Shown: positions 40,586 to 64,000 of the stretch, one piece after another
Position numbering within the stretch: position 1 is the stretch's first letter
Layout of the letters: each line of letters opens with the position of its first letter
Sequence record: LR756501.1
Strand: one strand, 5' to 3'
DNA: 64,000 nucleotides
Made by a program: the position numbers and the translations under genes
Notes under the pieces: model-generated
Seen by the model: the letters and a program-made list of their open reading frames with translations, nothing else
Databases searched by the model: none
What the model was told of the DNA's origin: nothing

Positions 40586-41452
40586 TTATGAATCCATTGG
40601 TAAAGAAATACTTTCTTTTTTATGAATCCATGATAATCTATTTTGTGTAATATTTTCTCCAAATATTTCGTTCACAGCTTTTTGAACGTCGTAAGAGTTA
40701 TAATAGTCGTGACCAGCGATTGTTCCGCCTATTTTCACTTTTGGGTACCATTCTGTTATATCTTTTTTAGCTATTTCGTAACTATGATCAGCGTCAATGA
40801 AAACAAAATCTAAGGACAGATCTTCGTAATATTTTGGAGCTATATAAGAACATTCTACTATTGGGTTTATGTATTCTTTTAACGGTGATATGTTTTTTAA
40901 AAAATTATCGTATAAATTATTATTTTTTAAATATTCTTCGTGATATATTTCACCTGAACCTTGCCAAGTATCTACACAATCAAATTTTATTTTCTTACCT
41001 GAATTTTTTATCTCGGTTGCCATAAATGAACCAGAACGTCCTAACCAAGAGCCTATCTCCACAAAATGATCACCGTCTTTCCCGTCTTGAACAGCCTTTT
41101 TATAAACACTTTGAAAGTCAAACCAACCGTCTATTTTATTATAAATATGATTACCGTATAATTTATCTATTTTTATATCAAATAGAAATGAGGAACCGTC
41201 GTAGAAATTTAAAGTTAAATCGTCATTATCATTAGAATACGCGTCTGGTTTTACCCAATGATTTGTACCTGGATAAGAAAAATTATCAGTAAGTGAGTAA
41301 CAAACATTACCATTTAAAACAAAATCTATTTTTAGTATTTTATTTAAATGTTCACTGCCACCAGCGTCATTCAAATTAACTGAACTAATAATAATTTTAT
41401 TTGGGTCATTTTCTATTCTAACATAGAAATCATTTTCAGTTGGATTTTTCAT
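40586..41452 (-). CDS. Class I SAM methyltransferase (Methyltransf_24-like) with N-terminal extension
   Basis: [11 protein letters not shown]; [10 protein letters not shown]; GGTIAGHDY. Confidence 0.88.
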
Positions 41453-42492
41453 CTTTTAAAAAATTTTTGCCATATATTTTTTTCACCATATTTATCTAAA
41501 TCACTTTCCATCATTAATTTAACCAAATCTTTAAATTTAGTTTTAGCTTCCCAACCAAGAATTTCTTTCGCCTTTGTTGGATCACCAAGTAAAAGATCAA
41601 CCTCTGCTGGTCTGAAATATTTTGGATCCACTTGTATTACAATAGTGTTATTTGTATTTCTATCTACTCCTATTTCATTTACACCTTCACCACGCCATAA
41701 TATATCAATATTAACATATTTACAAGCCTCTTCTACAAATTCTTTATTTGAATGTGCTTCACCTGTGGCTAAAACGAAATCATCTGGTTTATCTTGCTGT
41801 AACATAAGATACATACCATATACAAAATCTTTCGCGTAACCCCAATCCCTTTTGGCGTTTAAATTACCTAAATGTATTGGTGTTTTCGTTTTTGTCCAAT
41901 TAACTAAACCTTTTGTAATTTTTCTCGTTACAAAAGTTTCTCCTCTACGTTCACCTTCGTGATTGAACAATATACCGTTAGAAATGAATAAGTTATAAGC
42001 GTCTCTGTAATTTTTACAAATCCAGTAAGCGTAAAGTTTAGCTACACCGTAAGGTGATCTTGGGTGAAATGGCGTAGTTTCTTTTTGTGGTACTTCTTGT
42101 ACTTTACCAAACAATTCTGATGTAGATGCTTGGTAAATTTTTGTATGTGGTGAGTAACGTCTAACTGTTTCTAGGATTCTAAGTACCCCTAAAGCGTCTA
42201 CTTGTCCTGTATATTCAGGGAGTTCAAAAGAAACTGCAACGTGGGATTGGGCTGCTAGGTTATATAGTTCATCAGGTTTAATATCTTGTATAACGTGCTC
42301 TATTGATAGAGTATCTGTAACGTCACCGTAATGAAGTTTTAGTTGTGGATAAATATGATCAATTCTACCTGTATTAAAGGAGCTAGATCTTCTAATTATA
42401 CCGTGTACTTCGTAACCTTTTTCTAAAAGAAGCTCAGCTAAATGGCTTCCGTCCTGTCCCGTGATCCCTGTGATCAGTGCTTTTTTACTCAT
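41449..42492 (-). CDS. gmd: GDP-mannose 4,6-dehydratase
   Basis: [66 protein letters not shown]. Confidence 0.98.
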
Positions 42493-42516
42493 TTCATAGG
42501 CTATTATTTTTTAAGG
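42493..42516 (-). repeat. 24-bp leader element, copy 2
   Basis: Identical to 27073-27096; abuts the gmd start codon. Confidence 0.9.
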
Positions 42517-42573
42517 CGTTATGATATTTATAGATAAAAAATCTAAAAGTTTATTTTAATATATACAGTTACT

Positions 42574-42885
42574 ATGATAAAGAGTTTTAAATTATTTGAA
42601 TCTGAAATAAATGAAATAGATCCTTATGGTGAAGAAAATTGGGAAGGGATAGAAGAATTAACACCAGATACCCCTATAAATATTGGTGATACTATTTATT
42701 GGAGTGATGGAATTGAATTATGCACAATAACAAGAATTGAAAAAGATGACGAAGACGATTGGATATGGGGGATTACATCACCAGAATCGATTCAAAAAGG
42801 TTTTGTAAAAGAAACAGGAAATAAAGAACTACCATACGGAAGAAGGAATTTAACTCATAGTAAATTAAAAATAAAACACGTGTAG
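42574..42885 (+). CDS. Putative head-packaged small protein with DPYGEENW tag
   Basis: MIKSFKLFESEINEIDPYGEENWE; KOW/SH3-like remainder (IGDTIYW). Confidence 0.75.
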   Translation: MIKSFKLFESEINEIDPYGEENWEGIEELTPDTPINIGDTIYWSDGIELCTITRIEKDDEDDWIWGITSPESIQKGFVKETGNKELPYGRRNLTHSKLKIKHV

Positions 42886-43634
42886 TGATAAAGAGTTTTA
42901 AATTATTTGAAGAACTAAAAAGAAAAGTACCAGCAGACTTCTCAGTTGATTTCACACCCGAAACAGAAGACTTTGCTAAGTTTGAAAGTGATTTTCTATT
43001 AAAAGACGATTTTGTTATAGATAAAAACGTTGCTGTATGTAAAGAAAAACTTTGTTCTTTTGAAATTAAAAAAATCAATGAAGACGATTTAATTATATAT
43101 GAATTAACTATTAAAGATAAAGACGGCGTCGTAAAAAACGAGAAGAAATTTAGAGCACATCAATATATTCCAAAAGAAAGAATCAACTTATTAGATACTA
43201 TACTCAATGTGTGTGCTTTTATAAAAGATAAAGTAACAAGAGAAATTCATGCTGACGTTGATCCTTACGGGGAAGAAGTATGGGACGGTCCAGAAGAAAT
43301 TAAGAAACCAGAAAGAGATCCAATAGAAGCAGCCTACGGTGAAGAAGACTGGGACCCTGATAATGTTGACGTTGGAGTAAGAGCAAGAATGGCGAATCGT
43401 CATATACCACCAGCAGATATATTGGCTATATTACAAAGAGACCAACAACGCAGAGATAGAGAATTTGAAAGGGGCAGAGAAGCTAATATTGAAAGGCACG
43501 CAGCTGATATGCGTAGGCGAGCAGAAGAACAAAGAGCCGCGGCTGATGCAGCACCTAAAAAGAAAGGTTTTTATAAAACAATTGGAGATTTCCTTAAAAA
43601 ATCGGGACCTCCATCGATGCACCGTAGAGGATAA
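42885..43634 (+). CDS. Putative head-packaged protein with two DPYGEE-type tags (GTG start)
   Basis: MIKSFKLFE, with the same 5' DNA as 42574; VDPYGEEVWD and AYGEEDWD. Confidence 0.75.
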   Translation: MIKSFKLFEELKRKVPADFSVDFTPETEDFAKFESDFLLKDDFVIDKNVAVCKEKLCSFEIKKINEDDLIIYELTIKDKDGVVKNEKKFRAHQYIPKERINLLDTILNVCAFIKDKVTREIHADVDPYGEEVWDGPEEIKKPERDPIEAAYGEEDWDPDNVDVGVRARMANRHIPPADILAILQRDQQRRDREFERGREANIERHAADMRRRAEEQRAAADAAPKKKGFYKTIGDFLKKSGPPSMHRRG

Positions 43635-43673
43635 TTCAATAAACTTTTCAATCTTTTCTCGTTATATTAATCA

Positions 43674-44408
43674 ATGAGAAAATTCCTTTTAATCACGGAT
43701 AAAATAGAATTATTAGCAAGATTCAATCAAATAGTAGTATCTAAAAAACTTAGAGATGACTTTGATTACGGATGGAGCTATAATAACTACGACTTTTGTG
43801 CTGATTATCATAAATCTTTTAACTCTTGGATGTACAAACCTGTTGAACCAATTGACGTTAGAGATAAAAATTTATATAACTACGAAATAATCTTTTCTTT
43901 ACATTGTAAACAATTATTCCCAAAAGAACTTATAGAAAAAGTAAGATGTATTAATATTCATCCGGGTTATAATCCTTATAATAGAGGATGGTACCCACAA
44001 GTGTTTTCCATTTTAAATGGACTACCTTTTGGTGTAACAATACACGAAATAGATAATAAAATTGATCACGGTCCCATTATAACCCAAGAGCGAATATATA
44101 TAGAACCACACGACACTTCTCTTTCAGTTTACGAAAAAGTTGTTGACGTTGAAATGAAACTTCTTGATAGAAATTTAATTGATATAATTAATAAGAACTA
44201 CTCTTTTGTTAGAATACCAGATGAAGGGAACATAAATTACAAGAAAGATTTTAGTAATCTTGGAAAAATTGATAAAGATGACGAAGATACTTTTATTAAT
44301 CATATAACTAAATTAAGGGCTTTATCTCACGGTAATTTTAAAAATGCTTATTTTATTGACGAAAACGGAAATAAGATATTCATCAAAATTGAATTAACAA
44401 AACAATGA
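43674..44408 (+). CDS. NDP-4-amino-4,6-dideoxyhexose N-formyltransferase (VioF/Rv3404c-like)
   Basis: FSLHCKQLFP, CINIHPGYNPYNRGWYPQVFSI, TIHEID..IDHGPII (formyltransferase N-H-D motifs). Confidence 0.88.
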   Translation: MRKFLLITDKIELLARFNQIVVSKKLRDDFDYGWSYNNYDFCADYHKSFNSWMYKPVEPIDVRDKNLYNYEIIFSLHCKQLFPKELIEKVRCINIHPGYNPYNRGWYPQVFSILNGLPFGVTIHEIDNKIDHGPIITQERIYIEPHDTSLSVYEKVVDVEMKLLDRNLIDIINKNYSFVRIPDEGNINYKKDFSNLGKIDKDDEDTFINHITKLRALSHGNFKNAYFIDENGNKIFIKIELTKQ

Positions 44409-45121
44409 AATTCGGAATAGTACTACCTACTTATTATAGAAAAGACGGACAAACATTAGTCTTCTTATATAAAGCGATACAAAATATAATGCTTCAATCT
44501 CATTCTGATTGGAAACTTTTTCTAATTGGTGACGACTACGATAAACCAGACGAACTAGAATTCATAGCTTCACACGTGCCATCAATCATGATAACATATG
44601 TGAATTTACCAGTGGCTGATGAAAGAAGTAGATATACTGGTAACGATCTATGGTTGTGTAGTGGCACAAACGCTCTCAATAAAGGAATAGAATTATTAGA
44701 AAAAGAAGGAATAGATTATTACGCTCATTTTGATTACGAAGATAAATGGGAAGTAAATCATCTCGAACTACACAATAAAGCTTATCTTAAATATCCAACC
44801 GTATCTTTTGTTTATTCAAAGGCTCATTACGTTAGACCTAAAAATCTTTTTCCTCCTAATTTAACTGACGATGTAGTTAATAATTTACCACCAAAAGGTA
44901 GACAGGTTATTCATCAGACAGTAACTTTTAACGTGAGTAAGATGAAACATAGATATATTAATATGATAGATAAAGGGGAGAAGAAAGCATCTGACGCCGA
45001 TCTTTGGGACAGAATATATAAAGACGTAAAAGAAGGAAAATTAGATACTTACCACATACCTAAAGCCACTGCTTATCATTTAGCCGAAGGATATTGTGCA
45101 ACAATAGACTGGACAAAATGA
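44405..45121 (+). CDS. GT2-family glycosyltransferase
   Basis: IVLPTY, LFLIGDD, YAHFDYED, DADLW. Confidence 0.85.
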   Translation: MKFGIVLPTYYRKDGQTLVFLYKAIQNIMLQSHSDWKLFLIGDDYDKPDELEFIASHVPSIMITYVNLPVADERSRYTGNDLWLCSGTNALNKGIELLEKEGIDYYAHFDYEDKWEVNHLELHNKAYLKYPTVSFVYSKAHYVRPKNLFPPNLTDDVVNNLPPKGRQVIHQTVTFNVSKMKHRYINMIDKGEKKASDADLWDRIYKDVKEGKLDTYHIPKATAYHLAEGYCATIDWTK

Positions 45122-46143
45122 AAATAAACTGGGTAAATAAGAAAGATATTAACTGGGATAGAGTTAAACACTATATGGATTTTTCTATTAAAGAAAATCA
45201 ATTTAGTAACGACGGACCTCTACAAAAAATGCTAAGCGATAGACTTAGATCTATATTAAAAATTAGTTCCAGTAAAGTTATAATTCCAACTTGTAGCGGA
45301 ACTGCTGCTCTCCACGCTCTTGTTTCTGGCATAAATAGTAAACTCGGCGTTGAAACACGATGGGCAACCCAAGATTATACATTCCCAGTTTCAGCTCAAG
45401 GTGTACTGAGAAATTCAGTTATAGTGGATATAGATTATAACGACATTTCACCAGACTTAAATTCTTTAGAACATATTAAAGATAATATCAATGGAGTTAT
45501 AGTTACTAATATGTTTGGATTTGCCAGTGATGTTGAGAAATTCATTAAATGGAGTGTAGATAACGATAAATTTCTTATTTTTGATAGTGCCACTGCTCCA
45601 TATACATTCTACAATTTTTTAAATGTGAATAATTTCGGAGTTGGTTCTATAATTAGTTTGCATCACACGAAACCACTAGGATTCGGTGAAGGCGGAGTTA
45701 TTATAGTTGATAGAGAATACGAAGCCGATGTTAGAAAATCTATAAATTTCGGCTATACTAAATCAGTTAAGAAGTGGTCTGTACACGGATCTAACTGGAG
45801 AATGAGTGATATATCTGCAGCTTTCATTCTTCAACATTTAGATAATTTCTACGCTATTGATCATATTCATAAAGAATTAGCAAAATATTTTGAAAATAAA
45901 TTGAAAGAAACAAGATTTGAATTTATTAAACAGTACGATAATAGTTTAATATCATGTTTACCAATCAAATCATTTGAAGGCGAGATAGATATAAAAGACG
46001 TTGAATACAAGAAATATTACGAACCTCTTATAGGTTACGCCAACTCAAATAAATTATACAATGAAATAGTCTGTTTCCCTCTAAATACTGATATGACTAA
46101 TGAAGATTTAGACTATATAATAAAATACTTAAAGACAAAATGA
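45094..46143 (+). CDS. DegT/DnrJ/EryC1/StrS PLP-dependent sugar aminotransferase (likely start at MKINW, ~45118)
   Basis: CSGTAALHAL, LIFDSA, SLHHTKPLGFGEGG (PLP lysine), NWRMSDISAA. Confidence 0.92.
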   Translation: MCNNRLDKMKINWVNKKDINWDRVKHYMDFSIKENQFSNDGPLQKMLSDRLRSILKISSSKVIIPTCSGTAALHALVSGINSKLGVETRWATQDYTFPVSAQGVLRNSVIVDIDYNDISPDLNSLEHIKDNINGVIVTNMFGFASDVEKFIKWSVDNDKFLIFDSATAPYTFYNFLNVNNFGVGSIISLHHTKPLGFGEGGVIIVDREYEADVRKSINFGYTKSVKKWSVHGSNWRMSDISAAFILQHLDNFYAIDHIHKELAKYFENKLKETRFEFIKQYDNSLISCLPIKSFEGEIDIKDVEYKKYYEPLIGYANSNKLYNEIVCFPLNTDMTNEDLDYIIKYLKTK

Positions 46144-46775
46144 ACAAAGAAGAACAACAATATTATTTAGATAAATTACAACCATACGTTGAAGATTTTG
46201 AAGGAGAACGTTTTCACGAACATTATTTCATTCTACACTATCTCATAGATCAATTAGATAGAGACGTGAGATATTTAGAAGTTGGATTATGGGACGGTGC
46301 CAGTTTTTGTTACGTTGCTCAACATCCTAAAGTAAAAGAAGTATATGGTATAGATATTAAAGTAAGAGAACTCCTCTATAAAAACCTAGATAAATATCAA
46401 ATCAATGCTGGTATATTTCAAACAAATTCAAATGATAAATCAATTTTAGAATTAATAAAAGGTAAATTTGATTTAATATTCATAGATGGTAGTCATAATT
46501 ATTTTGACGTTATTAAAGATTATACAGTATATAAAGAACTTGTAGAAGTTGGTGGATATTTAGTGTTTGACGATTATATGGATAAATTTTCACCTGATGT
46601 TAAGAAAGCTGTAGATTACATGAGAAATATAGATAATTTCAAAGGTTTTGAAATAATTGGTAGTCTGGAACAACATATACCTATTTACTACGATTATAAA
46701 ATGGTTGAAGGTAAAGTAGTGAAAATATACGATTCACTCGGCACTCTTAATAATTACATCTTGAAGAAGTTATAA
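46140..46775 (+). CDS. Class I SAM methyltransferase (Methyltransf_24-like)
   Basis: YLEVGLWDGAS; FIDGSHNY; GGYLVFDDY. Confidence 0.88.
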   Translation: MNKEEQQYYLDKLQPYVEDFEGERFHEHYFILHYLIDQLDRDVRYLEVGLWDGASFCYVAQHPKVKEVYGIDIKVRELLYKNLDKYQINAGIFQTNSNDKSILELIKGKFDLIFIDGSHNYFDVIKDYTVYKELVEVGGYLVFDDYMDKFSPDVKKAVDYMRNIDNFKGFEIIGSLEQHIPIYYDYKMVEGKVVKIYDSLGTLNNYILKKL

Positions 46776-47879
46776 ATCTAAAAAGAATAATAAATTTTTA
46801 GATGTTCTGAATTCCATTCTTACGCGGTTGGCTTCACAATTATAACTATGATAGGGAATGTACCAACTTTCCATACCAGCTAAAGCTGTATAGTTTTTAT
46901 GTTCCCAATTCTTTTTATCTCCAGTATAGAAATAAAAACTCACATCGTGTTCAGGTGTAATATCTATATTTGGTCTCACAAATATTCTATCAACCTCACA
47001 TCTAATTGTGAAATCATTTATAGTTATAGGTGATAGAAATTTTAGTTCGTCCTTAACTATATTATAAATTTCATTATAATCTTCGATCCAAACATTTTTA
47101 CAATTAGATTTTGTTCCCCAAGTAATATGTCTCAATTTAGAAGAAGCACAAATATATGTTTTTTGTGTATTTTTCAAATTCTTTTCCATCCAACTGAAAA
47201 CATAAGGACCTGTCGACCTTCCAAATATCACGTCACAAAACAAAGATAAATAAGATATATCTATCAACTCTGGGGCTATGTCCGATGTGAATAAAACGTT
47301 AGGCTTATCTAAAGCTATTCTCTCTGTTAAAAGAAATTGAACATACGGATAATCATCTGATAATCTATTGATTATATCTAAAAAATTAATTTCCTTTATA
47401 GACTGGTAGGCAAACACGGGTCCATTCACAACAAGAACTTTTGGGTATTTATTAATTTCGATAAAGGCGTCAACCTTAGTTTTATCGATTGTATCAAAGT
47501 CTATGAATGGTACGTAGTCTCTTTCGTCTCCAAGTTTTATTCCTAATTTTTCGTATATGTGTGTAAATAATCTATAAAAAACACCAGATACAGTACGATC
47601 GGGTGAATCAACTTCTTCGTTAAATAAAGAATTATAAAATCCTATCCAAACATTTATATACAAATCGTTATTAACTCTTAATACAATAGTGGAATCTTGG
47701 CAATATTCGTTTGTTTTACCATATACCAAATTAGGAATATCACTTAATACTCCAGGATTATTGTTGTGTAAATATTGATATTCATCAAAATGTGTTTTCT
47801 TCATTATATCTCTAATATACGACCTTGTGAAATGAATATCACCATTATGCCATAAATTATAAAATATTAATTTACCCAT
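46770..47879 (-). CDS. GT-B/GT9-like putative glycosyltransferase, paralog of 55462..56571
   Basis: HNGDIHFTR N-terminus and IFGRSTGPY (GT9-like IGxDSGP); neighbour of a GT9 gene. Confidence 0.55.
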   Translation of the reverse strand: MGKLIFYNLWHNGDIHFTRSYIRDIMKKTHFDEYQYLHNNNPGVLSDIPNLVYGKTNEYCQDSTIVLRVNNDLYINVWIGFYNSLFNEEVDSPDRTVSGVFYRLFTHIYEKLGIKLGDERDYVPFIDFDTIDKTKVDAFIEINKYPKVLVVNGPVFAYQSIKEINFLDIINRLSDDYPYVQFLLTERIALDKPNVLFTSDIAPELIDISYLSLFCDVIFGRSTGPYVFSWMEKNLKNTQKTYICASSKLRHITWGTKSNCKNVWIEDYNEIYNIVKDELKFLSPITINDFTIRCEVDRIFVRPNIDITPEHDVSFYFYTGDKKNWEHKNYTALAGMESWYIPYHSYNCEANRVRMEFRTSKNLLFFLDL

Positions 47880-48723
47880 AAAATTCTTTTATTTTTTTAT
47901 AAACGTAACTAACATTAATAGAATCACATAATTCTTCATTGTAATCTTTAGTGTAGAAGTACTTATCCTGTAACGGACTTGTTATCTTTATAGTTCTTCC
48001 GTAATCATATATCTCGTGAGGTGAAGTACTATTAAATAAAGCTATCACCTTCTTTTTAAGAGCTATAGCTATATGCATTCCAAATGTATCTGGACAAACT
48101 ATTAAACCACAGTTGTTTATATCATCTATATGTTCTTTAACGGTTGGTTTTATATCTAAGAAACTAACGTCGTAATCTTTTTTAAGTAAATTATATAATT
48201 CATCAAATCCGTTCCATTGTTTACTCTTCCATACACCGTTAACTGTTTTTATTAATCCTATTTTATTTGATTTAATTGTTTCGTAATCAAATACATATTC
48301 TTGTTCTTCCCATTTTCCGCCAACCATTTCTATAAGAATTTGGTTATAGGATATTCTATTTTCTTTTTTCAATTTATTAGCGATACATTCACCGTAGTTA
48401 CTTATAAGGGACATATTGAACCAGTATTTACTTTCTACTGTATATGTTTTATGTTTATCAATTCCAACAAGTTTATCGTAAGAAGGACGCTCGTCGAAAG
48501 GATATTCTTCATTAAGGCTGATAACTAAATCGTAGTTTATTGTGCTGTAATAAGGTGATAAATCTTCTATAAAAAATAGTTCTTTAATGAGTTTTGAGTT
48601 AAGAATATCTATGTTACGGACTGATGTTAACCAATATATATTGTCGTGTTTAAACTGATTAAGGAGAATAGTAGTCCTCAATACGTCACCATGCGGTCCT
48701 ATGTTAATTATTAAAACATTCAT
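47872..48723 (-). CDS. GT9-family (heptosyltransferase-like) glycosyltransferase
   Basis: GPHGDVLRTT; IVCPDTFGMHIAIALKKKVIALF. Confidence 0.85.
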   Translation of the reverse strand: MNVLIINIGPHGDVLRTTILLNQFKHDNIYWLTSVRNIDILNSKLIKELFFIEDLSPYYSTINYDLVISLNEEYPFDERPSYDKLVGIDKHKTYTVESKYWFNMSLISNYGECIANKLKKENRISYNQILIEMVGGKWEEQEYVFDYETIKSNKIGLIKTVNGVWKSKQWNGFDELYNLLKKDYDVSFLDIKPTVKEHIDDINNCGLIVCPDTFGMHIAIALKKKVIALFNSTSPHEIYDYGRTIKITSPLQDKYFYTKDYNEELCDSINVSYVYKKIKEFYG

Positions 48724-48753
48724 ACTAAAACATAATATAACGAAAAAACAAAA

Positions 48754-49488
48754 TTGTTTATGAAAAGATTACCTATTGACTATGTTTCATCTAGAGATAA
48801 GCATTATTTTCTTTTTAAACAAGATATAGGTTTAACAAGCTGTATAAGGGAAGGAAGATTATGGGAGCCACACTTATACGAAGCAATTAAAGATTACGAT
48901 TTAAAAGGTACCAACATAATAGATATTGGTGCAAATTTAGGTGCTCACACTCTCGAATTTGCAGAAATAGTTGGCGATGAAGGTAAAGTCTACGCATTTG
49001 AGCCACAGAGAATAGTTTATTATCAACTATGTGCCAATATAATAGCAAATGGATTCGATAACGTCATCGCTATTAATAAGGCTTTATCTAATAGGAATGG
49101 AGTAACACATATAGAAAAACAAAATTTTTATTTAGACGGATTATTAAATATAGGTGATACTCACATATCAAATGAAGGCGAATTAGTAGATGAAATAAGA
49201 TTAGATGATTTGCGTTACGATAATGTTAGTTTAATAAAGATGGACGTGCAGGGTTACGAACCATTTGTTCTTGATGGGGCGATAGATACAATATGGAGAA
49301 ACAAACCAATTATTTTAATTGAAATAGAAGAAAGCCAATTAGTTGGGTTTAATAAGTCTACAAGTGATGTGATTAATTTTTTCAAAAGTATTTCTTACGA
49401 TGTTAAAAAAATACACGATATAGATTATATAGCGACACCAAAAAATAATAGCAGTTTTGTAGTTTATGCAACCAAAAATAGATTATGA
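48754..49488 (+). CDS. FkbM-family methyltransferase
   Basis: [33 protein letters not shown]. Confidence 0.92.
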
Positions 49489-56571: not shown

Positions 56572-57564
56572 ATCCATTACCCAATTCTTAATGGAAAGAA
56601 GTTCGTATTTAGAAACTATATCTTCGTCAAATAACTTATGATATACTAAACATAAATCAGTAGTCATACTTATTCCAGATAATTTAACACTATTTAGAAT
56701 ATCTATTAATCTTGGAACAACTAGATACATAGACATCTCGTCCTTAAAATCATTTAAATAATTGTGCTGATTTCTCACCTGATGAGTATCAGGACTGTGG
56801 AATCCTAAATTATAACCATATTCCCACATTATTCTTTGTGCTACATAACCTCTCAGAATATCAGTAAATCTAAAATTAACAGACATAGGTAAATACATCA
56901 ACGGGAAACATTCTTTTCTCCATAAAGTATTCTGTGTGTTAAACGGGCTATACAGTCCACTATTTAAAGAAATTTCTTTACCTTCTTCGAATTTTATATT
57001 TACCTTCTTATTCGTTAATCTATATATGGCGTCAACGTCAGTATCTCCATTTATTAAACCCTGCCATACTCCTATTTTAGATGTGGATCTTTCCTCTTTA
57101 TATTCTATGTCTTCGTTTATCTTTGTTATATCAAAACCACGATGCCATATATTCTCTTTGGTAAACAGCTTATAAATATTAATTACCCTAGATGGCGACG
57201 TTATTTTATTATCACATTCAAACTTAAAATCTTTGAGAAAATTATTATCATTTATAAATGTGTCGTCATCAGATTCATATATAACCTCAGCCCCATTAAC
57301 CATAGCGTAAATATAACCAATATTCTTTCTGGAATAATGGTTCTCTGGAGTAGTAGATATAGACCTATATTTAAAATCTAATTGATCATCTAACGATAAG
57401 AATATCAAATCTTTATAACTATAAGTTTCACTTTTATCGTCGCCAACTATAATTGTTTTAAAGTTATCTACTTGTGTAAATTGTTTAATATTATCGTTTA
57501 GTGGGTTTATTGTTGTTATTACTATATTATTCATATTTCTTTCTCCATAATCTATTATGCCCAC
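56551..57564 (-). CDS. STELLO/DUF288-like glycosyltransferase
   Basis: IVITTINP, IVGDDKS, NHYSRKNIGYIYA, IYESDDD, DTDVDAIYRL, FNTQNTLW, RFTDILRGY. Confidence 0.85.
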   Translation of the reverse strand: MGIIDYGERNMNNIVITTINPLNDNIKQFTQVDNFKTIIVGDDKSETYSYKDLIFLSLDDQLDFKYRSISTTPENHYSRKNIGYIYAMVNGAEVIYESDDDTFINDNNFLKDFKFECDNKITSPSRVINIYKLFTKENIWHRGFDITKINEDIEYKEERSTSKIGVWQGLINGDTDVDAIYRLTNKKVNIKFEEGKEISLNSGLYSPFNTQNTLWRKECFPLMYLPMSVNFRFTDILRGYVAQRIMWEYGYNLGFHSPDTHQVRNQHNYLNDFKDEMSMYLVVPRLIDILNSVKLSGISMTTDLCLVYHKLFDEDIVSKYELLSIKNWVMDLNYLLK

Positions 57565-59071
57565 AGGCGAACAAATGTGTATAATTTTCGTTATTATCTA
57601 TGTAATCTTTTACGGCTCTAGCTACGTCTGGGTGTCCGTTAAATCTCCCTTCTCTACCAGATAGTTTCAGATCGCTTGAAGAGTCGTCTAATATTAAAAA
57701 TCCACCAGGTTTTAATTCTTTTTCAGCTATTAACAGATCGTTAACAACTGTTTCGTAATCGTGTCCACCATCTATGTACATACAATCATATGTTCCGTAA
57801 TTGTGAATATTTGTTTTCACGTCTTCGCTTGTAGATAATCCTTTTATTAACGTGAGATTACTAATATTCAATCCAAGTAAAGAATATAAATTTTTAATGT
57901 CTTGTAGATAGTTGGTATTATCGTAGGATCCGTATTTATCACCAGTTGGATCTAAAGGTGTTGCTCCGTATATTTTAAATGATTTATTTAATTTATCACT
58001 AATTAATTGCATTAAAGCGAGAATGGACCCTTTATAAACTCCTATTTCCAGGAATTTGCTATTTGGTCGCATCATAGCACCTATTAAAAGCCAAAAATAC
58101 CTGAAAGCTCTTTCCCCGTATCCCAGTCCTCTACCAGAAACTACTTGATGATGATTAGATAAGAAATCGTAAGAATCTACTTTAGATAGGTACCAATCGT
58201 AAATAAAATTATTATAATAATATGTATCTACCCACTCTTTTGATTTTTCGTATTCCAACAATAAATCTTTTAATTGAGTTCTATTTTTAAAATAGTTTGC
58301 GTGTTTTTTTGTTAAATATTGATTATTTCTTACGATAATTCTATCGTGATCTGGTCGACTGTGTTCTCTTGTACCTCCCCACGATAATAAACTTTTAAAT
58401 TTAACACCTTTTACAACGTTCTGGTAACCTAGCATATTTAATCTTATACATAAATCTGTATCGTCGTGACCAAATGGTGCAAGTTTTTCATCAAAATAAC
58501 CAACGTGATTTAAGACATCTCTTTTAATAGAAGTTGGACTTTTTATAAGACTTTCACAGAATATCATCTCACCTTGTTTTAATTCTCTGAAATTTGTAGA
58601 TCCCATTTGTTTCCAATGACCAAATTCAGATTCTACAAATTCGTATTCATCAATAGAAGTGCCATTAGATTTTAAAGTCATTCCACATCTAAAAGAAATA
58701 TAACCAACAGTAGGATATTCTTTATATATCTCTCTTGTTGGTTTTTCAAAATTTTCTTCTAGTATAACATCGTCTTGTAATAAATAATAAATATCATCTG
58801 GTTCTTGTGGAAAATTATCATCAATATATTTAAAAGCAGCGTTCAAAGATAATAACTCGTGCACGTCATTTGCCTTTAATTTAATAATGTTCGCTAAATT
58901 TTTAGAAGCAATTTCATCTATTATATTTTCTGTGTTGTCTTTACAACCATCTAGCACACAAATGATGTAATTCTTTGAGTCTTCACTTAAATTGTTTATA
59001 ACTCCGTAAACTACATCAGATATTAATTTTTCTTTATTGAAAATTGTAATAATATAAAAATTTCTATTCAT
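57527..59071 (-). CDS. GT2 glycosyltransferase fused to a class I methyltransferase
   Basis: ITIFNKE..VLDGCKD..LQDD..GHDDTDLC; FLEIGVYKGS..YIDGGHDY..LILDD. Confidence 0.88.
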   Translation of the reverse strand: MNRNFYIITIFNKEKLISDVVYGVINNLSEDSKNYIICVLDGCKDNTENIIDEIASKNLANIIKLKANDVHELLSLNAAFKYIDDNFPQEPDDIYYLLQDDVILEENFEKPTREIYKEYPTVGYISFRCGMTLKSNGTSIDEYEFVESEFGHWKQMGSTNFRELKQGEMIFCESLIKSPTSIKRDVLNHVGYFDEKLAPFGHDDTDLCIRLNMLGYQNVVKGVKFKSLLSWGGTREHSRPDHDRIIVRNNQYLTKKHANYFKNRTQLKDLLLEYEKSKEWVDTYYYNNFIYDWYLSKVDSYDFLSNHHQVVSGRGLGYGERAFRYFWLLIGAMMRPNSKFLEIGVYKGSILALMQLISDKLNKSFKIYGATPLDPTGDKYGSYDNTNYLQDIKNLYSLLGLNISNLTLIKGLSTSEDVKTNIHNYGTYDCMYIDGGHDYETVVNDLLIAEKELKPGGFLILDDSSSDLKLSGREGRFNGHPDVARAVKDYIDNNENYTHLFACGHNRLWRKKYE

Positions 59072-59074
59072 ATG

Positions 59075-59302
59075 TTATCTCCTTAATTGTTTTAGTCTTT
59101 CGTCCTGTATGATTTTCTCTTTTGATGTTTCTACCCCATTTCTAAAGTAATAAGTTCTAATAGTTATCTCATCAATCGTTAAAACAACCTTACAAAATCC
59201 CCCTTTAACAAAATCTATAATATCATAAGGATCGTAACTACTTACATCGGCTCTAACCACATTAAATAATATGCCATCTTCTTCCTGAATACTATCCGTC
59301 AT
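59075..59302 (-). CDS. Hypothetical protein
   Basis: ORF track. Confidence 0.6.
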   Translation of the reverse strand: MTDSIQEEDGILFNVVRADVSSYDPYDIIDFVKGGFCKVVLTIDEITIRTYYFRNGVETSKEKIIQDERLKQLRR

Positions 59303-59304
59303 AA

Positions 59305-59511
59305 TTATTCGTTATTTTTTAAATCCATAAACTTATCTATCTCATCTTTAGGATGATCGTTATTAAATATAGCGTACTTTCTAATGCCTTCTTTATCAGG
59401 CATTTCTGTTAAATGTCCAGCTACTGTTTTTCGCATTTCGTCATCTGAAAAGATGAGCATTATGGGTTCGTCTTTACTGTCGTAAATTTTATTACCTATT
59501 TTTACTTTCAT
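59305..59511 (-). CDS. Hypothetical protein
   Basis: ORF track. Confidence 0.65.
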   Translation of the reverse strand: MKVKIGNKIYDSKDEPIMLIFSDDEMRKTVAGHLTEMPDKEGIRKYAIFNNDHPKDEIDKFMDLKNNE

Positions 59512-59520
59512 ATTATTTAA

Positions 59521-59865
59521 TTAGTTTTTATAATCTATATAAACTTTAATAAATTTCTTTGTGCATCCGTCAGGGTGTTCACAGTAAGCTACGTTGTTAT
59601 TACCATAGTGATATATACTATCACCATTCAAACAGAACACTATATAATTATCACCCAACGTTTTAAGAAAATCTTCAAGTGTATGGGTATCATTTATTTC
59701 CACGTCTTTTGTGTGAGCTCTAGTAAAGCTATTGGAAAAAAATTGATCAAAAGAATCGTTTGGAATAATTTTACCAAATGGTTCTTTATGAATCACGTTC
59801 CAATAGAATTCGTCGCGATCTACAAAAAAGTACCTTTTTCCTGTTAATTCTTCAAAATATTTCAT
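59521..59865 (-). CDS. Hypothetical protein
   Basis: ORF track. Confidence 0.6.
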   Translation of the reverse strand: MKYFEELTGKRYFFVDRDEFYWNVIHKEPFGKIIPNDSFDQFFSNSFTRAHTKDVEINDTHTLEDFLKTLGDNYIVFCLNGDSIYHYGNNNVAYCEHPDGCTKKFIKVYIDYKN

Positions 59866-59869
59866 AATT

Positions 59870-60418
59870 TTAATTTTTAATTACTTGTGCAAAATCTAAT
59901 TCAACTGGTGTCTTTCTACCAAAAATCTTAATACTAACTTTAAGACGTTTCTTTTCCTCGTTAATTTCTTCTATACAACCGTTAAAATTAGCGAAAGGGC
60001 CGTCTGATATTACTATATTTTCACCTGTAACAAAATCAATCTTGGCACTATCACCAGCCTCAGCTAAAGCGTCAATCTTACCAAGAATCTTCTTAACTTC
60101 CTCTGGTCGAATAGCGTCCGGTACGTCTTTACCATTCTTGTCTTTTCCTCCTAATATACTTATAACCCCAGATGTTTCTTTTATAACGTGTTGAATCTCA
60201 CCCCTTAGGTCTGCTTCAATAAGAATATAACCTGGGTAATAATTAACTTCTCTATTAACTTTCTTTCCATTTTTGACGTAGACTTCTTTTCTAGTAGGTA
60301 TAACCATTCTAGTAACATATTCTTTTAAATTTTGTTTTTCAAACTCTTTTTCTATATGTTTGTAAGCCTTCTTTTCTTGCCCACTCGAGCATCTAATCAC
60401 GTACCATTTATTTTCCAT
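59870..60418 (-). CDS. nusG: Transcription elongation/antitermination factor NusG
   Basis: KWYVIR..SGQEKK, YYPGYILIE, DGPFANFNG, VSIKIFGRKTPVELDF.QV (NGN plus KOW domains). Confidence 0.97.
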   Translation of the reverse strand: MENKWYVIRCSSGQEKKAYKHIEKEFEKQNLKEYVTRMVIPTRKEVYVKNGKKVNREVNYYPGYILIEADLRGEIQHVIKETSGVISILGGKDKNGKDVPDAIRPEEVKKILGKIDALAEAGDSAKIDFVTGENIVISDGPFANFNGCIEEINEEKKRLKVSIKIFGRKTPVELDFAQVIKN

Positions 60419-60420
60419 AT

Positions 60421-60777
60421 TTATTCATTTACTTTTTTATATTCGGGTAATTTTTCAAACAGATCTTTATCCACAATAATGTTATTTTCATATCCCTCAT
60501 CTTCATTTAGATATGTATGTACTAACTGATTAACAGTAATATAATCTGTATCTATATCAGCGTTGTGAAGATAATGTAATGTTTCTTCTAATTCTTTTTT
60601 ATCTTTTTGTGTAGGAACGATAATTTTAAACTTTGTCCAATCAACAGTTGAAAATTCTTCATTAGTCAACTCATCAGACATCCTTCTCTTTTTATCATAT
60701 TTTGGATCTTTATAATCTTCATATCTTTTAAGAGTCCAACCGTCCATAAGGCTTTTATATTTCTTTATCTTTACCAT
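60421..60777 (-). CDS. Hypothetical protein
   Basis: ORF track. Confidence 0.65.
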   Translation of the reverse strand: MVKIKKYKSLMDGWTLKRYEDYKDPKYDKKRRMSDELTNEEFSTVDWTKFKIIVPTQKDKKELEETLHYLHNADIDTDYITVNQLVHTYLNEDEGYENNIIVDKDLFEKLPEYKKVNE

Positions 60778-60782
60778 TTTAT

Positions 60783-61592
60783 TTATACTTTATTTTTTTC
60801 TAATTGTTTAATTCTATTTTCTATATCCTCAATAGTGTCCATTAATAACATATCGTAAGTGTAGATATTTTCTTGATAAGAATAGAACAATTTTTCTGAA
60901 TGTCTACTCTTAGTTACGTTATTATCTTTAACGTATTTATTATAATCCATGCCAAAATACTTAAATAAGTCCTTAATGAAATCGTTAACGAAAAACAATC
61001 TTCCACTTCCAACCATTTCGTCACCTGTGGCTTTTATAGATCTTTCTACCATATATTTAGTGTGAACCAAATCCCTGTAAAAATATGTGTTACCTATCTC
61101 TATTGGTGTTTTATTAATCAAACAATCAAATATTTTACCAAATAGAAATTCCTTCTTCCTATAAGTAGAATTGAAATTAAATGGATGAATTATAATCACA
61201 TTCTTCCACCATCCGTTATCTTTTCTGTCCCAAATATATTTTATTAACTTTTCTTTGGAAAGACAATAATCATTTGAGTAGGAGTAGAAAAACTCTTCAC
61301 CTGGATAAACACAACCAATTCTATTGTTCCAAAGATCACAAGTTCCGTATATAACTATTTTATTTGAAGAACCTACAAGATTTTCTATAATATCTCTCGT
61401 ATATATAAAATTTGGAGTAATATAATCTATATCACTCATATAGACACGTTGCTCAGCAAATGTAATATAAACAGAATCCCATTTATTGTATCTGAGATAA
61501 CTCACATCAATATTCCTTGATGGTATTCTTTCGTAATCATCTGGGAAAAAATGTGATAACTGTGACGACTCACCTATTATTAAATTTTTCAT
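60783..61592 (-). CDS. Atypical SDR-family NAD-dependent epimerase/reductase
   Basis: Degenerate nucleotide-binding loop LIIGESSQL; YCLSK (YxxxK); RDLVH. Confidence 0.7.
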   Translation of the reverse strand: MKNLIIGESSQLSHFFPDDYERIPSRNIDVSYLRYNKWDSVYITFAEQRVYMSDIDYITPNFIYTRDIIENLVGSSNKIVIYGTCDLWNNRIGCVYPGEEFFYSYSNDYCLSKEKLIKYIWDRKDNGWWKNVIIIHPFNFNSTYRKKEFLFGKIFDCLINKTPIEIGNTYFYRDLVHTKYMVERSIKATGDEMVGSGRLFFVNDFIKDLFKYFGMDYNKYVKDNNVTKSRHSEKLFYSYQENIYTYDMLLMDTIEDIENRIKQLEKNKV

Positions 61593-62551
61593 GTAAAATA
61601 ATGTTCTTTATATTTTTTATAAAAATCGTAAGTTTTAAATATACCTTCTTCAAAAGTTATCTTAGGGTACCAACCAGTTCTTATTAATTTACGATTATCT
61701 ATTTCAAAATTACCAGTTTCTATTTTCTCGTAATTCACTGGCCACTCAACGTATTTAACTTCACCACATTTAACTATACTTACTATTTTTTCTACCATAT
61801 CCTTAAATCTAATCGAATGACCGTAACCCAAATTGTAAATATTATTATAATAACTTTCATTCATGAGATTTAAAATAGCTGAGATAATATCATCTATATA
61901 AATATAATCCCTATTCTGATTACCGTCACCAAATATACTGATAGTCTTCCCTTCCATGGCCTGTCTTATAAACCAACCAACCATAGAATATTTACTGTGT
62001 TTCATTTGCTGTTTAATACCGTAAGGATTAGCTAATCTCAATATAACATATGGAATTCCAAAATTCCTGTGATATATTTCTAAATATCTTTCAGACGTTA
62101 ATTTATGCGTTCCATATATAGATGTTGGGACTGTAGCGTATTCCTCATTAACCATAACATCAACCTTACCGTAAACTAATCTTGAACTAGTGAAGAAAAC
62201 AAGAATATTAGGGTTTATTTTCTTAATACTTTCAAGTATGTTTAATGTGGAAACAGAATTAACGTCAGCGTCTTCATATACCATATTCAAACTATCAATA
62301 TAACTAACTTGAGCAGCAAAATGAAAAACAACATCTATATCTTTAATTAGTTCATTCAATAATTCCTTATTTCTAACGTCTCCTTTAACAACTTTAATAT
62401 TATCTTTATTAGCGTCGTGTAAATTAAATTCGTTACCCCCGTAAAGAGGATTCAAATTATCTATTATAGTAACTTTATTATCTGTGTTAGAAAGAATTGT
62501 AGCTAGGTTTGAACCTATAAAACCTAAACCTCCTGTTATTAATACTCTCAT
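61589..62551 (-). CDS. NAD-dependent sugar epimerase/dehydratase
   Basis: VLITGGLGFIGS, VFHFAA, YGTHK, LRLANPYG, GDGNQNRDYIYIDD. Confidence 0.95.
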   Translation of the reverse strand: MRVLITGGLGFIGSNLATILSNTDNKVTIIDNLNPLYGGNEFNLHDANKDNIKVVKGDVRNKELLNELIKDIDVVFHFAAQVSYIDSLNMVYEDADVNSVSTLNILESIKKINPNILVFFTSSRLVYGKVDVMVNEEYATVPTSIYGTHKLTSERYLEIYHRNFGIPYVILRLANPYGIKQQMKHSKYSMVGWFIRQAMEGKTISIFGDGNQNRDYIYIDDIISAILNLMNESYYNNIYNLGYGHSIRFKDMVEKIVSIVKCGEVKYVEWPVNYEKIETGNFEIDNRKLIRTGWYPKITFEEGIFKTYDFYKKYKEHYFT

Positions 62552-62565
62552 TAAATTTCATTTTT

Positions 62566-63246
62566 TTATCCTGGTATATTATGTTGAATAAAAGGTAATA
62601 TCGAAAAAATAGATACCGTCTTAATATCATATTTTAATTTCAAATTAGTTAAAACAGATTGATCTGCCCTGTTATCACCACAATATTCTACGTGATTTTC
62701 GTTAATATTATTCTTGGTTAAAATATTTTCGTTTCTACAAAACATTAACCATTCCTCAACAAATTTAATAGTTTCATCAGTTTTCTTAAATCCTATAGCA
62801 CCAGCCTCTAATTGATTGGCTTCCCAGTATTTAGGTTCGTCACACCCCATAAAAACGAAACAATCTTTAGTTGTCCAAGTTTTATTTGAATGAGTAGATT
62901 GAACTAAAAAGAAGCCGTTGTTTTCTTCTATAATACTTAACAGAAAACCTTTTATGTTATGATGTAATATATCACCAACGTCCATATAAAAAAGAACGTC
63001 ACCGTATTCCATTTCCATTAATTTCTTGTGAATATAAAAAGGTTTCCAAAGACACCAACCAGCGTACCTTGTTTGGTCTAATATTCCCCTATTTTCTTCG
63101 TAAAATGGTTCTTTAATAAGAGTATCTCTATTATAAACAGTAACACTATCAAAAAATTTAACAGCACTATTTTTCGTTCTATTAGCTTCTCTTAAATATC
63201 TACTATCACCTTTATCATCGTAGTATGTTATAAAATTTGTAGTCAT
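62566..63246 (-). CDS. Putative GT-A glycosyltransferase-like protein
   Basis: GWCLWKP..LFYMDVG..DNRADQSVL pattern. Confidence 0.6.
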   Translation of the reverse strand: MTTNFITYYDDKGDSRYLREANRTKNSAVKFFDSVTVYNRDTLIKEPFYEENRGILDQTRYAGWCLWKPFYIHKKLMEMEYGDVLFYMDVGDILHHNIKGFLLSIIEENNGFFLVQSTHSNKTWTTKDCFVFMGCDEPKYWEANQLEAGAIGFKKTDETIKFVEEWLMFCRNENILTKNNINENHVEYCGDNRADQSVLTNLKLKYDIKTVSIFSILPFIQHNIPG

Positions 63247-63494
63247 TTCTTACCGTAGCTTTTTGTATCACCCTGTTTATAATTTTTGAATGATATTTTA
63301 CCTTTAGAAGCTTCAATCAACATTTCGTCTAACTCTTGTATTAAATCTGTTCTTTGCTGATTTAAGATATTTGTTTTTCTAGTGGCGTCAGCTATCTCAG
63401 CGTCATCTTTAGAGTCTCTTTTAATATCTTCGTATTTCCATATTTTGAGATTTACTATTGTGAGTTTGTCCACTAAATTTCCAAATGTTTCCAT
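63243..63494 (-). CDS. DUF4254-like helical protein
   Basis: LVDKLTIVNLKIWKYED..R...LNQQRTDLIQELD. Confidence 0.55.
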   Translation of the reverse strand: METFGNLVDKLTIVNLKIWKYEDIKRDSKDDAEIADATRKTNILNQQRTDLIQELDEMLIEASKGKISFKNYKQGDTKSYGKK

Positions 63495-63498
63495 CCAA

Positions 63499-64000
63499 TT
63501 AATCTTGTTTTTTAATATAAAAATCGTTCACAGCTAACCTCTGATCTTTAATGTAACCAAAACTGTTCATATAATCCTCTATATTCTTATCTTCATAATT
63601 GTTCTCAATTATAAATAATTTAGGTTGCCATTTATTAATATCAAACCCTTTTAAAACATCCAACTCTGTCCCCTCAGTATCTATACTTACAAAATCAATT
63701 GAATCATATTCATAATGATTTTCGATACAATAATCAAGAGTTCTTATATCACACGTAATAGGTATTATTTTTATATCAAATTGTGAATGCTCTTTTATTA
63801 ACCTATCATCAATCTTCAAACTACTAATGGCGTCTTCTATCTGATTATTTAAAACAACTATATTAAATGTGGCAAAATCCTCGTTATAATTAGATACAGC
63901 TAAATTTAAAGCGTTCTTTCTATTATTCTTTAAATTATTATAAAATTTAGGATTTGGCTCAACACACATGCAATACCAACCTTCCTGTTCAAAGTGTAAA
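63499..64000 (-). CDS. FkbM-family methyltransferase (5' end beyond the window)
   Basis: Frame open to 64000 (LHFEQEGWYCMCVEPNP); FVSIDTEGTELDVL; FIIENN. Confidence 0.9.
   Translation of the reverse strand, partial: LHFEQEGWYCMCVEPNPKFYNNLKNNRKNALNLAVSNYNEDFATFNIVVLNNQIEDAISSLKIDDRLIKEHSQFDIKIIPITCDIRTLDYCIENHYEYDSIDFVSIDTEGTELDVLKGFDINKWQPKLFIIENNYEDKNIEDYMNSFGYIKDQRLAVNDFYIKKQD

Follow-up and report, generated by a model that had tools for sequence, protein, structure and literature searches.

Virus-encoded glycosylation and the island in LR756501.1

Autonomous glycosylation in giant viruses, virion glycosylation in mycobacteriophages and large clusters resembling lipopolysaccharide (LPS) genes in cyanophages are already known. 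The subject of this study is a glycan-synthesis island of a huge phage, located in a 64,000-nucleotide stretch of sequence record LR756501.1 (hereafter the window) and continuing past its end. Analysis of the island points to a self-contained cytoplasmic glycan-making pathway of a phage with a predicted Bacteroidota host, with the phage's own collagen-like fibres as the most likely acceptor; we give this reading a probability of about 45%. New here are the scale of the system, a branch with an L136-type aminotransferase and a VioF-type formyltransferase that is unique among GenBank phages, and the occurrence of glycosyltransferases (GTs) of eukaryote and giant-virus type alongside mucin-like collagen fibres.

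The fibrils of Mimivirus bear 2-O-methyl-N-acetyl-viosamine. In this virus L136, R141 and L142 make viosamine for the fibrils, a methylated viosamine derivative is present on the fibrils, and collagen-like proteins are encoded too (PMC9614988). Comparison with the Mimivirus cluster (R141 dehydratase, L136 aminotransferase, L142 N-acetyltransferase/GT and the L137-L140 GTs) revealed that both have a predicted or known viral 4-amino-4,6-dideoxyhexose pathway, an L136-type aminotransferase and clustered soluble GTs. The island differs in its bacterial host, in VioF-type N-formylation instead of N-acetylation, in the lack of an R141-type dehydratase, in its far larger number of GT and methyltransferase domains and in its additional C-methyl and branched-sugar enzymes. 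Furthermore, the phage aminotransferase forms a deep separate branch and is not nested in the giant-virus sequences.

In the chlorovirus PBCV-1 (GMD A118R, A064R, A061L, A075L, A111/114R) soluble multi-domain GT-methyltransferase enzymes glycosylate the capsid (PMC9614988). A064R contains two GT domains and a methyltransferase. The island shares with PBCV-1 a viral GDP-mannose 4,6-dehydratase (Gmd), soluble enzymes without signal peptides, fusions of two GTs with a methyltransferase and an exostosin-like GT; methylated 6-deoxyhexoses are found in PBCV-1. PBCV-1 infects algae, its glycans are attached to the major capsid protein by N-linkage and its enzymes have been tested, whereas the phage is represented by genes only and its suspected acceptor is O-linked Ser/Thr of fibres.

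A non-viral parallel is found in Bacillus anthracis, where the O-glycans on the collagen-like Gly-Pro-Thr region of the exosporium protein BclA end in anthrose, which is viosamine in methylated and N-acylated form (PMC9614988, section 4.1). BclA and the C. difficile BclA3/SgtA system are glycosylated in the mother-cell cytoplasm without export (PMC9614988; PMC6947953; PMC7157674). The likeness lies in collagen-like repeats with Thr in the triplet and in BclA glycans capped by an O-methylated, N-acylated 4-amino-4,6-dideoxyglucose. BclA differs in belonging to a bacterial spore, in its acyl group and in a much smaller gene set.

Among phages, the genome of P-SSM2 has Gly-X-Y (Pro/Ser/Thr) fibre open reading frames (ORFs) beside 'LPS' clusters whose function was never established (PMC1079782). 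These clusters are smaller than the island, were read as host LPS modification and have no L136-like or VioF-like homologue, as judged from a search of 50,697 GenBank phage records. As summarised in PMC12619734, mycobacteriophage GTs glycosylate the phages' own capsid and tail-tube proteins; attachment is at the C-termini of the subunits, and the system has few genes and is not known to include comparable sugar-nucleotide tailoring. The gene content of the island is that of giant-virus-type autonomous glycosylation, namely enzymes for nucleotide sugars and soluble GTs and methyltransferases, often combined in multi-domain proteins. The evidence that its glycan would be attached to virion proteins, as in the giant-virus systems, is circumstantial.

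Source and extent of the island

LR756501.1 ('uncultured phage', 735,411 bp; duplicate record LR756503.1) is the 735-kb genome of Al-Shayeb et al. 2020, manually curated and circularised, assigned to the Mahaphage clade and with Bacteroidetes as predicted host (PMC7162821); the phage origin proposed in a preliminary description of this DNA is therefore confirmed. The main text of that paper does not mention glycosyltransferases or polysaccharides (PMC7162821). The window corresponds to positions 255061-319060 of the record (record coordinate = window coordinate + 255060), and window positions 40000-64000 were 100% identical to record positions 295060-319060. Positions past 64000 are given as extended coordinates, in which the window numbering is carried on, or as positions of the downstream stretch L002 (L002 18469 = extended 82469). 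The public runs containing the island stretch are freshwater or lake metagenomes, and no RNA run was found to contain it.

The preliminary description had reported an island of about 24 kb from 40586 to 64000. Its start at 40586 is correct, but its end is not, since the minus-strand operon crossing 64000 runs 18.5 kb further, as far as the start of a GT10-like gene at extended 82469. The island thus spans 40586 to about 82469 (about 42 kb, about 46 genes), of which 18.5 kb lie beyond the window end, and it includes an embedded nusG gene that had gone unmentioned. Overall it contains roughly 18-21 GT domains and 12-13 methyltransferase domains, together with Gmd, two more short-chain dehydrogenases/reductases (SDRs), an aminotransferase, a formyltransferase, one O-acetyltransferase and a branched-sugar module. 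NCBIfam, Pfam and fold comparisons placed every gene class listed earlier where it had been reported, that is Gmd, the formyltransferase, the DegT aminotransferase, three FkbM methyltransferases, the acetyltransferase and the GT2, GT9-like and STELLO enzymes; the two further SDRs and at least four other methyltransferase domains were also found.

Predicted amino sugar

Family calls in this study are NCBIfam and Pfam annotations with curated cut-offs. The sugar N-formyltransferase (43674-44408, plus strand, 244 aa) is of the VioF type (NF005755, 265 bits against a cut-off of 238) and contains both PF00551 and PF18216 (N_formyltrans_C). Comparison with six solved formyltransferases acting on thymidine diphosphate (dTDP)-4-amino-4,6-dideoxyglucose, including VioF, Rv3404c and a Francisella enzyme, gave 183-216 bits; PDB 6V33 scored 216 bits and 4YFV 208 bits. 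Brucella WbkC (5VYR/5VYS) gave 43 bits over the catalytic core alone, and the enzyme was not classed as WbkC-type. No virus-encoded sugar N-formyltransferase turned up in the literature searched.

The pyridoxal phosphate (PLP)-dependent sugar 4-aminotransferase of the DegT family (45118-46143, plus strand, 341 aa, PF01041) matched Mimivirus L136 (PDB 7MFO) over residues 2-336 with 244 bits (E 2e-71), whereas the next solved relative scored 44 bits; GDP-perosamine synthase was absent among its solved relatives at E ≤1e-5. The enzyme has an HHTK motif (His182, His183, Thr184, Lys185) in which K185, H182 and T184 are invariant across 32 homologues, and K185 is probably the PLP-binding lysine. L136 converts UDP- or dTDP-4-keto-6-deoxyglucose into viosamine (PMC9614988). 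Since the aminotransferase resembles L136 and the formyltransferase is VioF-type and not WbkC-type, the amino sugar is most likely a nucleotide-linked 4-formamido-4,6-dideoxyglucose (N-formyl-viosamine) rather than N-formyl-perosamine. Of the two chemistries put forward in the preliminary description, the second, N-formyl-viosamine, is thus the better one, and the leading proposal of GDP-N-formyl-perosamine is not borne out by the enzyme types.

Gmd (41449-42492, minus strand, 347 aa; TIGR01472, 520 bits against a cut-off of 415, residues 3-334) is the sole 4,6-dehydratase recognised in the 735-kb genome, in which neither RmlA nor RmlB was found. The extended, epimerase-like SDR (61589-62551, minus strand, 320 aa) was considered as the missing NDP-glucose 4,6-dehydratase (RmlB) and rejected: it scored 168 bits with TIGR01181, for which the cut-off is 365, and has Ser-Ser-Arg opposite the Thr-Asp-Glu of 6BI4 and 2HUN. 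The 4-keto-6-deoxyglucose nucleotide precursor would presumably be supplied by the host. The short SDR of the NAD-dependent epimerase/reductase type (60783-61592, minus strand, 269 aa) had an atlas feature score of 0.99 to Epimerase-family clusters that include Tll-type reductases. Gmd and this short SDR would separately yield GDP-6-deoxyhexoses, which fits the GT10 fucosyltransferase-like enzyme of the island.

Solubility of the enzymes and export machinery

None of the 47 island proteins has a 19-residue Kyte-Doolittle window of ≥1.6, that is, a candidate transmembrane helix, in agreement with the earlier description of the enzymes as soluble. All ORFs of at least 80 aa in the 735-kb record were scanned with a simple hydropathy filter for three or more hydrophobic segments. 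The real matches were a PitA-like phosphate transporter, two CDF cation transporters, an importer-type ABC permease, PnuC, an HsmA-family protein and an M50-like protein, the last called from an HEGGH motif with no family match. The phage transporter ORFs are located at record positions 514647-515633, 654772-655650, 351262-352179, 648278-649099, 425132-425701 and 373099-373461. The remaining matches were antisense artefacts of repeat genes and two proteins without a family match.

No flippase, Wzy, WaaL, ABC-2 exporter, oligosaccharyltransferase or GtrA family member was present among the matches of this hydropathy scan, and the best match of the initiating phosphoglycosyltransferase model in the genome was 14 bits. 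As far as the scan reaches, the lack of export machinery described earlier for the island thus appears to hold for the whole 735-kb genome including the flanks; host components could serve.

The largest protein with many hydrophobic segments and no assigned family in the genome, of 1691 aa (record 21458-26533, minus strand), has a coiled-coil N-terminus and could be tape-measure-like or membrane-acting.

Collagen-like fibres as candidate acceptor

Gly-X-Ser fibres had been named earlier as candidate acceptors. They are real and far more extensive than the window alone reveals: at least 11 collagen-like Gly-[Thr/Ser]-[Ser/Thr] proteins are encoded among the virion structural genes of this genome. 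The large ones have 3,487 aa (833 triplets), 2,830, 2,816 (778 triplets; Ser+Thr 56%), 2,372, 1,664, 1,196 (Gly-Pro-Thr/Gln), 814 and 695 aa. Four small collagen-like genes are in the window (1487-2206, 2221-2931, 5239-5652 and 7805-9058), and further loci are at record positions 102894-124287, 390335-422930 and 586021-588108. Several of the proteins have in common a conserved N-terminal domain of about 50 aa, after which come a collagen stalk, differing in length between proteins, and a globular C-terminus. For the non-repeat parts of the family, no homologue was found in other GenBank phages. Two genes between the giant fibre genes match PHROG 8510 'virion structural protein' (E 1e-14 and 6e-11). 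Proline-poor collagen helices can be stabilised by O-glycosylated Thr, as in Riftia cuticle collagen.

Six proteins encoded outside the island resemble island proteins, and two of them are at fibre loci. One is a 1140-aa protein whose C-terminal 345 residues are shared (33% identity, E 2e-49) with residues 1411-1749 of the 1755-aa multi-domain enzyme of the island. Its gene is head-to-head with the gene of the 695-aa fibre, 98 bp apart, and is followed by that of a 738-aa PHROG glycosyltransferase (E 2e-11); the 1140-aa protein itself has no PDB, NCBIfam or PHROG match. The other is a 220-aa GT25-like paralogue of the 1122-aa island enzyme, encoded 1.9 kb from the main fibre array. This placement of paralogues at fibre loci is a hint of fibre glycosylation.

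Analysis of the record also revealed a promoter-like motif, TT[AT]ATATATA[GC], with 104 occurrences compared with 15-20 for permuted controls. It is intergenic in 89 of the 104 cases though the genome is 90% coding, and 87 sites have a start codon on the same strand within 120 nt, with distance modes of 5 nt and about 19-23 nt. The motif precedes 7 of the 14 collagen-like genes and 78 of the 811 others (Fisher p = 2e-4); examples are at record positions 410364, 419696, 422957 and 585993. In the island it occurs as TTAATATATAC at window positions 42556-42566, 8 nt upstream of the plus-strand sub-operon that starts at 42574.

Phylogenetic affinity and distribution

Among 50,697 GenBank phage records, no other phage has a homologue of the aminotransferase or the formyltransferase at E ≤1e-10. 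In IMG/VR, 114 contigs with relatives of the aminotransferase (35-45% identity) were found, many of them giant-virus metagenome-assembled genomes (MAGs). An alignment-based scan of 185,579 prokaryote species genomes yielded only 17 aminotransferase loci with at most 33% identity, mostly from Thermoanaerobaculia and Acidimicrobiia, and a single-protein scan of prokaryote genomes yielded none; pattern-based searches of prokaryotes could have missed bacterial relatives. In a maximum-likelihood tree, 81 viral and 16 bacterial sequences were separated with 100% support in the Shimodaira-Hasegawa-like approximate likelihood ratio test (SH-aLRT). Within the viral part, the phage pair forms a long, deeply diverging branch that falls outside the group (95% support) containing all 19 giant-virus MAG sequences. 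Judged by this tree, the gene belongs to the L136 group; a transfer from giant viruses is not indicated by the tree.

A 597-kb JGI contig has a related gene set, comprising a 1615-aa DUF8361-methyltransferase-GT2 protein, DUF4254, FkbM, a C-methyltransferase, a 58%-identical GT9-like protein and a Gmd-like SDR; islands of this type are therefore found more than once in huge phages of freshwater. Of the GenBank phages, LR756504 (636 kb) contains just one GT9-like gene (28% identical), and the amino-sugar genes were not found in other huge phages (E ≤1e-10). A few kb from the glycan island of this contig lies the gene of an 807-aa protein in which major-vault-protein domains were recognised (Vault_3, MVP_shoulder; L137 14971-17394).

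Proposed pathway and alternative explanations

In the pathway that we propose, host GDP-mannose and a glucose-derived 4-keto nucleotide sugar would be retailored in the cytoplasm, and soluble, often fused GT-methyltransferase enzymes, organised like chlorovirus A064R, would build up the glycan on the fibre proteins themselves. It would be capped by the FkbM and Methyltransf_24 enzymes and by the xenobiotic-type O-acetyltransferase domain, and the product would be a complex, heavily O-methylated, partly O-acetylated hetero-oligosaccharide on a cytoplasmic acceptor. The acceptor would be the Gly-Thr-Ser collagen-like fibres, which would receive the glycan before the virion is assembled or while this takes place, and the glycan coat may stabilise their proline-poor triple helices and shield the virion or tune adsorption. 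Enzyme families, solubility and the lack of recognisable exporters were observed directly, whereas the structures of the sugars, the sequence of reactions and the identity of the acceptor are inferred. The virion fibres are the best acceptor candidate and the only one with circumstantial support. The nearest functioning parallels are the fibril glycans of Mimivirus, the glycosylated capsids of chloroviruses and the BclA/anthrose nap of Bacillus spores. In a more specific form, this would be a giant-virus-style O-linked coat of N-formyl-viosamine and C-branched sugars on thousands of fibre Ser/Thr residues, made without host glycosylation machinery and with an aminotransferase from a pool shared with Nucleocytoviricota, a version that we hold tentatively, as possible without being probable.

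Several observations weigh against glycosylation of the fibres. The adjacency of paralogues and fibre genes concerns two of six cases, for which a rough estimate of chance is p about 0.02-0.16. The promoter-like motif is present at just one of 42 island genes, so that co-regulation of the island and the fibres is unsupported. The island and the fibre family both occur in one lineage and, for this reason, give no statistical test of co-occurrence. A 390-aa ORF with several hydrophobic segments and the membrane-associated 1691-aa protein are both without a family match. The classical substrate of GT9 enzymes is the LPS core. Transmembrane helices are also missing from most GTs of O-antigen and capsule synthesis, so lipid-linked synthesis on host undecaprenyl phosphate is compatible with soluble enzymes.

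These last points lead to host-envelope remodelling, in which soluble phage enzymes would work on undecaprenyl-phosphate or lipid A intermediates of the host, at the inner side of the membrane, and give the cell an O-antigen, LPS core or capsule that is new or modified, with initiation, export and ligation by the host; the new surface would block superinfection or alter recognition during a long infection. Soluble or peripheral GTs are the norm in O-antigen synthesis, the classic chemistry of which includes N-formyl-4-amino-6-deoxyhexoses, 6-deoxyhexoses and methyl caps. The formyltransferase homologues of solved structure come from O-antigen pathways, and three island enzymes are of the GT9 type, the LPS heptosyltransferase family. 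The 24 sugar genes of cyanophage P-SSM2 were read by their authors as LPS genes (PMC1079782). However, no initiating, flipping, polymerising, ligating or exporting part was recognised in 735 kb, and host exporters and ligases are usually fitted to their own substrates. Many GT families of the island are of eukaryote or giant-virus type (GT10, GT25, GT47, GT77, Fringe and STELLO), the aminotransferase is in the viral L136 group, and the island paralogues adjoin fibre genes and not membrane genes; overall, a host-envelope target is the main alternative and a serious rival, though we regard it as less likely than the fibres. A slim chance is left for another cytoplasmic target, such as phage DNA bases, host proteins or a small-molecule glycoside. 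Glycan hypermodification of phage DNA exists, and DegT, C-methyltransferase and TPP (thiamine pyrophosphate)/radical-SAM enzymes also occur in antibiotic deoxysugar pathways, but known phage DNA-glycosylation systems use one to few transferases compared with about 20 GT domains and 12-13 methyltransferases here, and annotation of the island found no base-hydroxymethylating enzyme, polyketide synthase or nonribosomal peptide synthetase in or beside it (for a hydroxymethylating enzyme, the search went no further into the genome).

Independently of the target, Gmd might feed the aminotransferase and the formyltransferase to give GDP-N-formyl-perosamine. Gmd directly adjoins the operon of these two enzymes, divergently transcribed, and the phage encodes no other 4,6-dehydratase, which keeps this sugar alive and counts against the pathway as we propose it; the similarity of the formyltransferase to dTDP-type enzymes, above an NCBIfam equivalog cut-off, and that of the aminotransferase to L136 make the GDP sugar rather improbable. 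An assembly artefact, with host DNA mis-joined to the phage, is very unlikely. The GC content of the island (0.292) is the lowest of any 42-kb stretch, the others having 0.306-0.399 (genome 0.322), but in tetranucleotide usage it agrees with the remaining genome (correlation r = 0.977), just as random 42-kb pieces do on average. The left junction (38500-44400) is covered with zero differences by one 80-kb contig of a public run, which may be the source sample; a second study has identical short contigs on either side of it, and an IMG/VR contig of a relative with 94% protein identity has the same genes across it. The right junction is bridged by Logan contigs, the genome was manually curated and circularised (PMC7162821), and the phage-wide promoter-like motif stands at the head of one island operon. 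The chimeric join to a host chromosome that the preliminary description had considered is contradicted by these data. Some 'joints' seen in read mapping had sides of at most 34 letters and were taken as repeats or other organisms, not rearrangements.

If the glycan is indeed on the virion, the island would be by far the most elaborate phage glycosylation system known to us and the equivalent, in bacterial viruses, of the systems of Mimivirus and the chloroviruses. Fibre glycosylation would then bear on adsorption of huge phages, on resistance to proteases and grazing and on evasion of recognition; it would offer a testable reason for the frequency of proline-poor collagen repeats in phage fibres, and virion fibril glycocalyces would be a convergent or shared trait of the largest bacterial and eukaryotic viruses. 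If the target is the host surface, the phage would be devoting an unusual amount of its genome to changing the envelope of a Bacteroidota cell. In addition, the island is a compact source of uncharacterised enzymes, including a GT-B family without a Pfam model (883 representatives), DUF8361 and fused GT-methyltransferase-acetyltransferase proteins.

Glycosyltransferases and modifying enzymes

The largest enzyme of the window part, of 1755 aa (49466-54733, plus strand), has an N-terminal hexapeptide O-acetyltransferase domain of the xenobiotic type, followed by Methyltransf_24, GT2, DUF8361, GT2, DUF8361-like and C-terminal domains. The O-acetyltransferase domain scored 150 bits to Vat/CatB, below the cut-off, and is assigned at the family level only. 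The fold model of the C-terminal domain is poor (predicted local distance difference test, pLDDT, 52), and its matches to glycogenin/cytidylyltransferase (GT-A) and Ig-like folds are a lead only. A second fusion (57527-59071, minus strand, 514 aa) was assigned to GT2 and Methyltransf_24 by family annotation.

GT9 and GT9-like enzymes are represented by three proteins. The 283-aa GT9 enzyme (47872-48723, minus strand, PF01075) has weak heptosyltransferase matches. A 369-aa GT9-like GT-B enzyme with a C-terminal beta domain (46770-47879, minus strand) is 36% identical over 365 residues to a second protein of the same length (55462-56571, plus strand); the family has 883 representatives at 50% clustering. 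The AlphaFold2 model of the former (pLDDT 94) matched the GT9 enzymes 3TOV, WaaF, WaaC and TibC in a Foldseek search (E 1e-7 to 1e-5). 3TOV, WaaF and WaaC rank above TibC, all with TM-scores of about 0.4-0.5, and the search does not separate LPS-type from TibC-type enzymes; TibC-like clusters had an atlas score of only 0.90. The other GTs in the window are a divergent GT2-type (GT-A) enzyme (44405-45121, plus strand, 238 aa), whose homologue P0282 (37% identity, E 2e-37) has PF00535, and a STELLO-family enzyme (56551-57534, minus strand, 327 aa, PF03385). A 226-aa protein (62566-63246, minus strand) may be a GT-A-like nucleotide-sugar transferase, an assignment that is a lead only; next to it is an 83-aa DUF4254 protein (63243-63494, minus strand, PF14063).

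Three FkbM methyltransferases were identified at 48760-49488 (plus strand, 242 aa; TIGR01444, 93 bits against a cut-off of 38), 54730-55446 (plus strand, 238 aa; TIGR01444, 80 bits) and 63499-64000 (minus strand, 205 aa), the last gene ending at 64116, past the window. The Methyltransf_24 domains of the two fusion proteins are accompanied by two separate S-adenosylmethionine-dependent methyltransferases of this family: a 288-aa protein at the left edge of the island (40586-41452, minus strand, PF13578), the C-terminal part of which is 51% identical to a 181-aa island paralogue, and a 211-aa protein (46140-46775, plus strand) recognised by Pfam.

Beyond 64000 the operon continues, in order, with a DUF1848 protein, a 336-aa protein without an assigned family, a TylC3-like C-methyltransferase (408 aa), a truncated E1-alpha-like TPP subunit (201 aa), a radical-SAM/SPASM protein (350 aa), an E1-beta-like protein (176 aa), further Methyltransf_24 proteins and a second C-methyltransferase (407 aa). 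These are followed by a Fringe/DUF8361 protein (490 aa), a GT2 protein, the 1122-aa protein with GT47-exostosin, RXYLT1_C, GT77 and GT25 domains, two more GT2 proteins and the GT10 fucosyltransferase-like gene. The branched-sugar module at L002 2259-8180 (extended 66259-72180) combines the two TylC3-like C-methyltransferases, the half-size E1-alpha and E1-beta TPP subunits and the radical-SAM/SPASM protein; judged by the families of these enzymes, its products are probably sugars with a C-methyl group or a two-carbon branch.

NusG homologue, small proteins and flanking genes

A NusG homologue of 182 aa (59870-60418, minus strand; TIGR00922, 166.6 bits against a cut-off of 135.7) is encoded mid-way in the roughly 26-kb minus-strand glycan operon. 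It was considered as a glycan antiterminator of the UpxY/RfaH type and rejected, as it scored 59.8 bits for UpxY (cut-off 100), 50.7 for RfaH (144.5) and 91.5 for LoaP (125). In the 642-kb relative LR756502, nusG is among gyrB and exonuclease genes and not glycan genes, so its linkage to glycan genes is not conserved. On either side of this gene in the operon are three small ORFs of 75, 68 and 114 aa (59075-59865, minus strand), called as genes with no family match, and a 118-aa protein without an assigned family (60421-60777, minus strand).

At the head of the plus-strand sub-operon are two small acidic proteins of 103 and 249 aa with a common N-terminus and no family match (42574-43634, plus strand). 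Both have a repeated Asp-Pro-Tyr-Gly-Glu-Glu-x-Trp motif, and paralogues occur at record positions 7451-9568 and 592719-593042.

A tRNA scan of the window found none, and an Rfam search of the window and 30 kb downstream gave no match. A run of 21 N is present at 26462-26482, inside a 1202-aa SbcC-like/metallophosphoesterase ORF (23465-27073). The left flank of the island is a GGACT-family (gamma-glutamyl cyclotransferase-like) gene (39181-39507, minus strand) and the right flank a genuine deoxyribose-phosphate aldolase gene (L002 18568-19359, plus strand; 241 bits against a cut-off of 117), neither with an obvious glycan role; beyond the aldolase gene are unrelated genes, for example RtcB.

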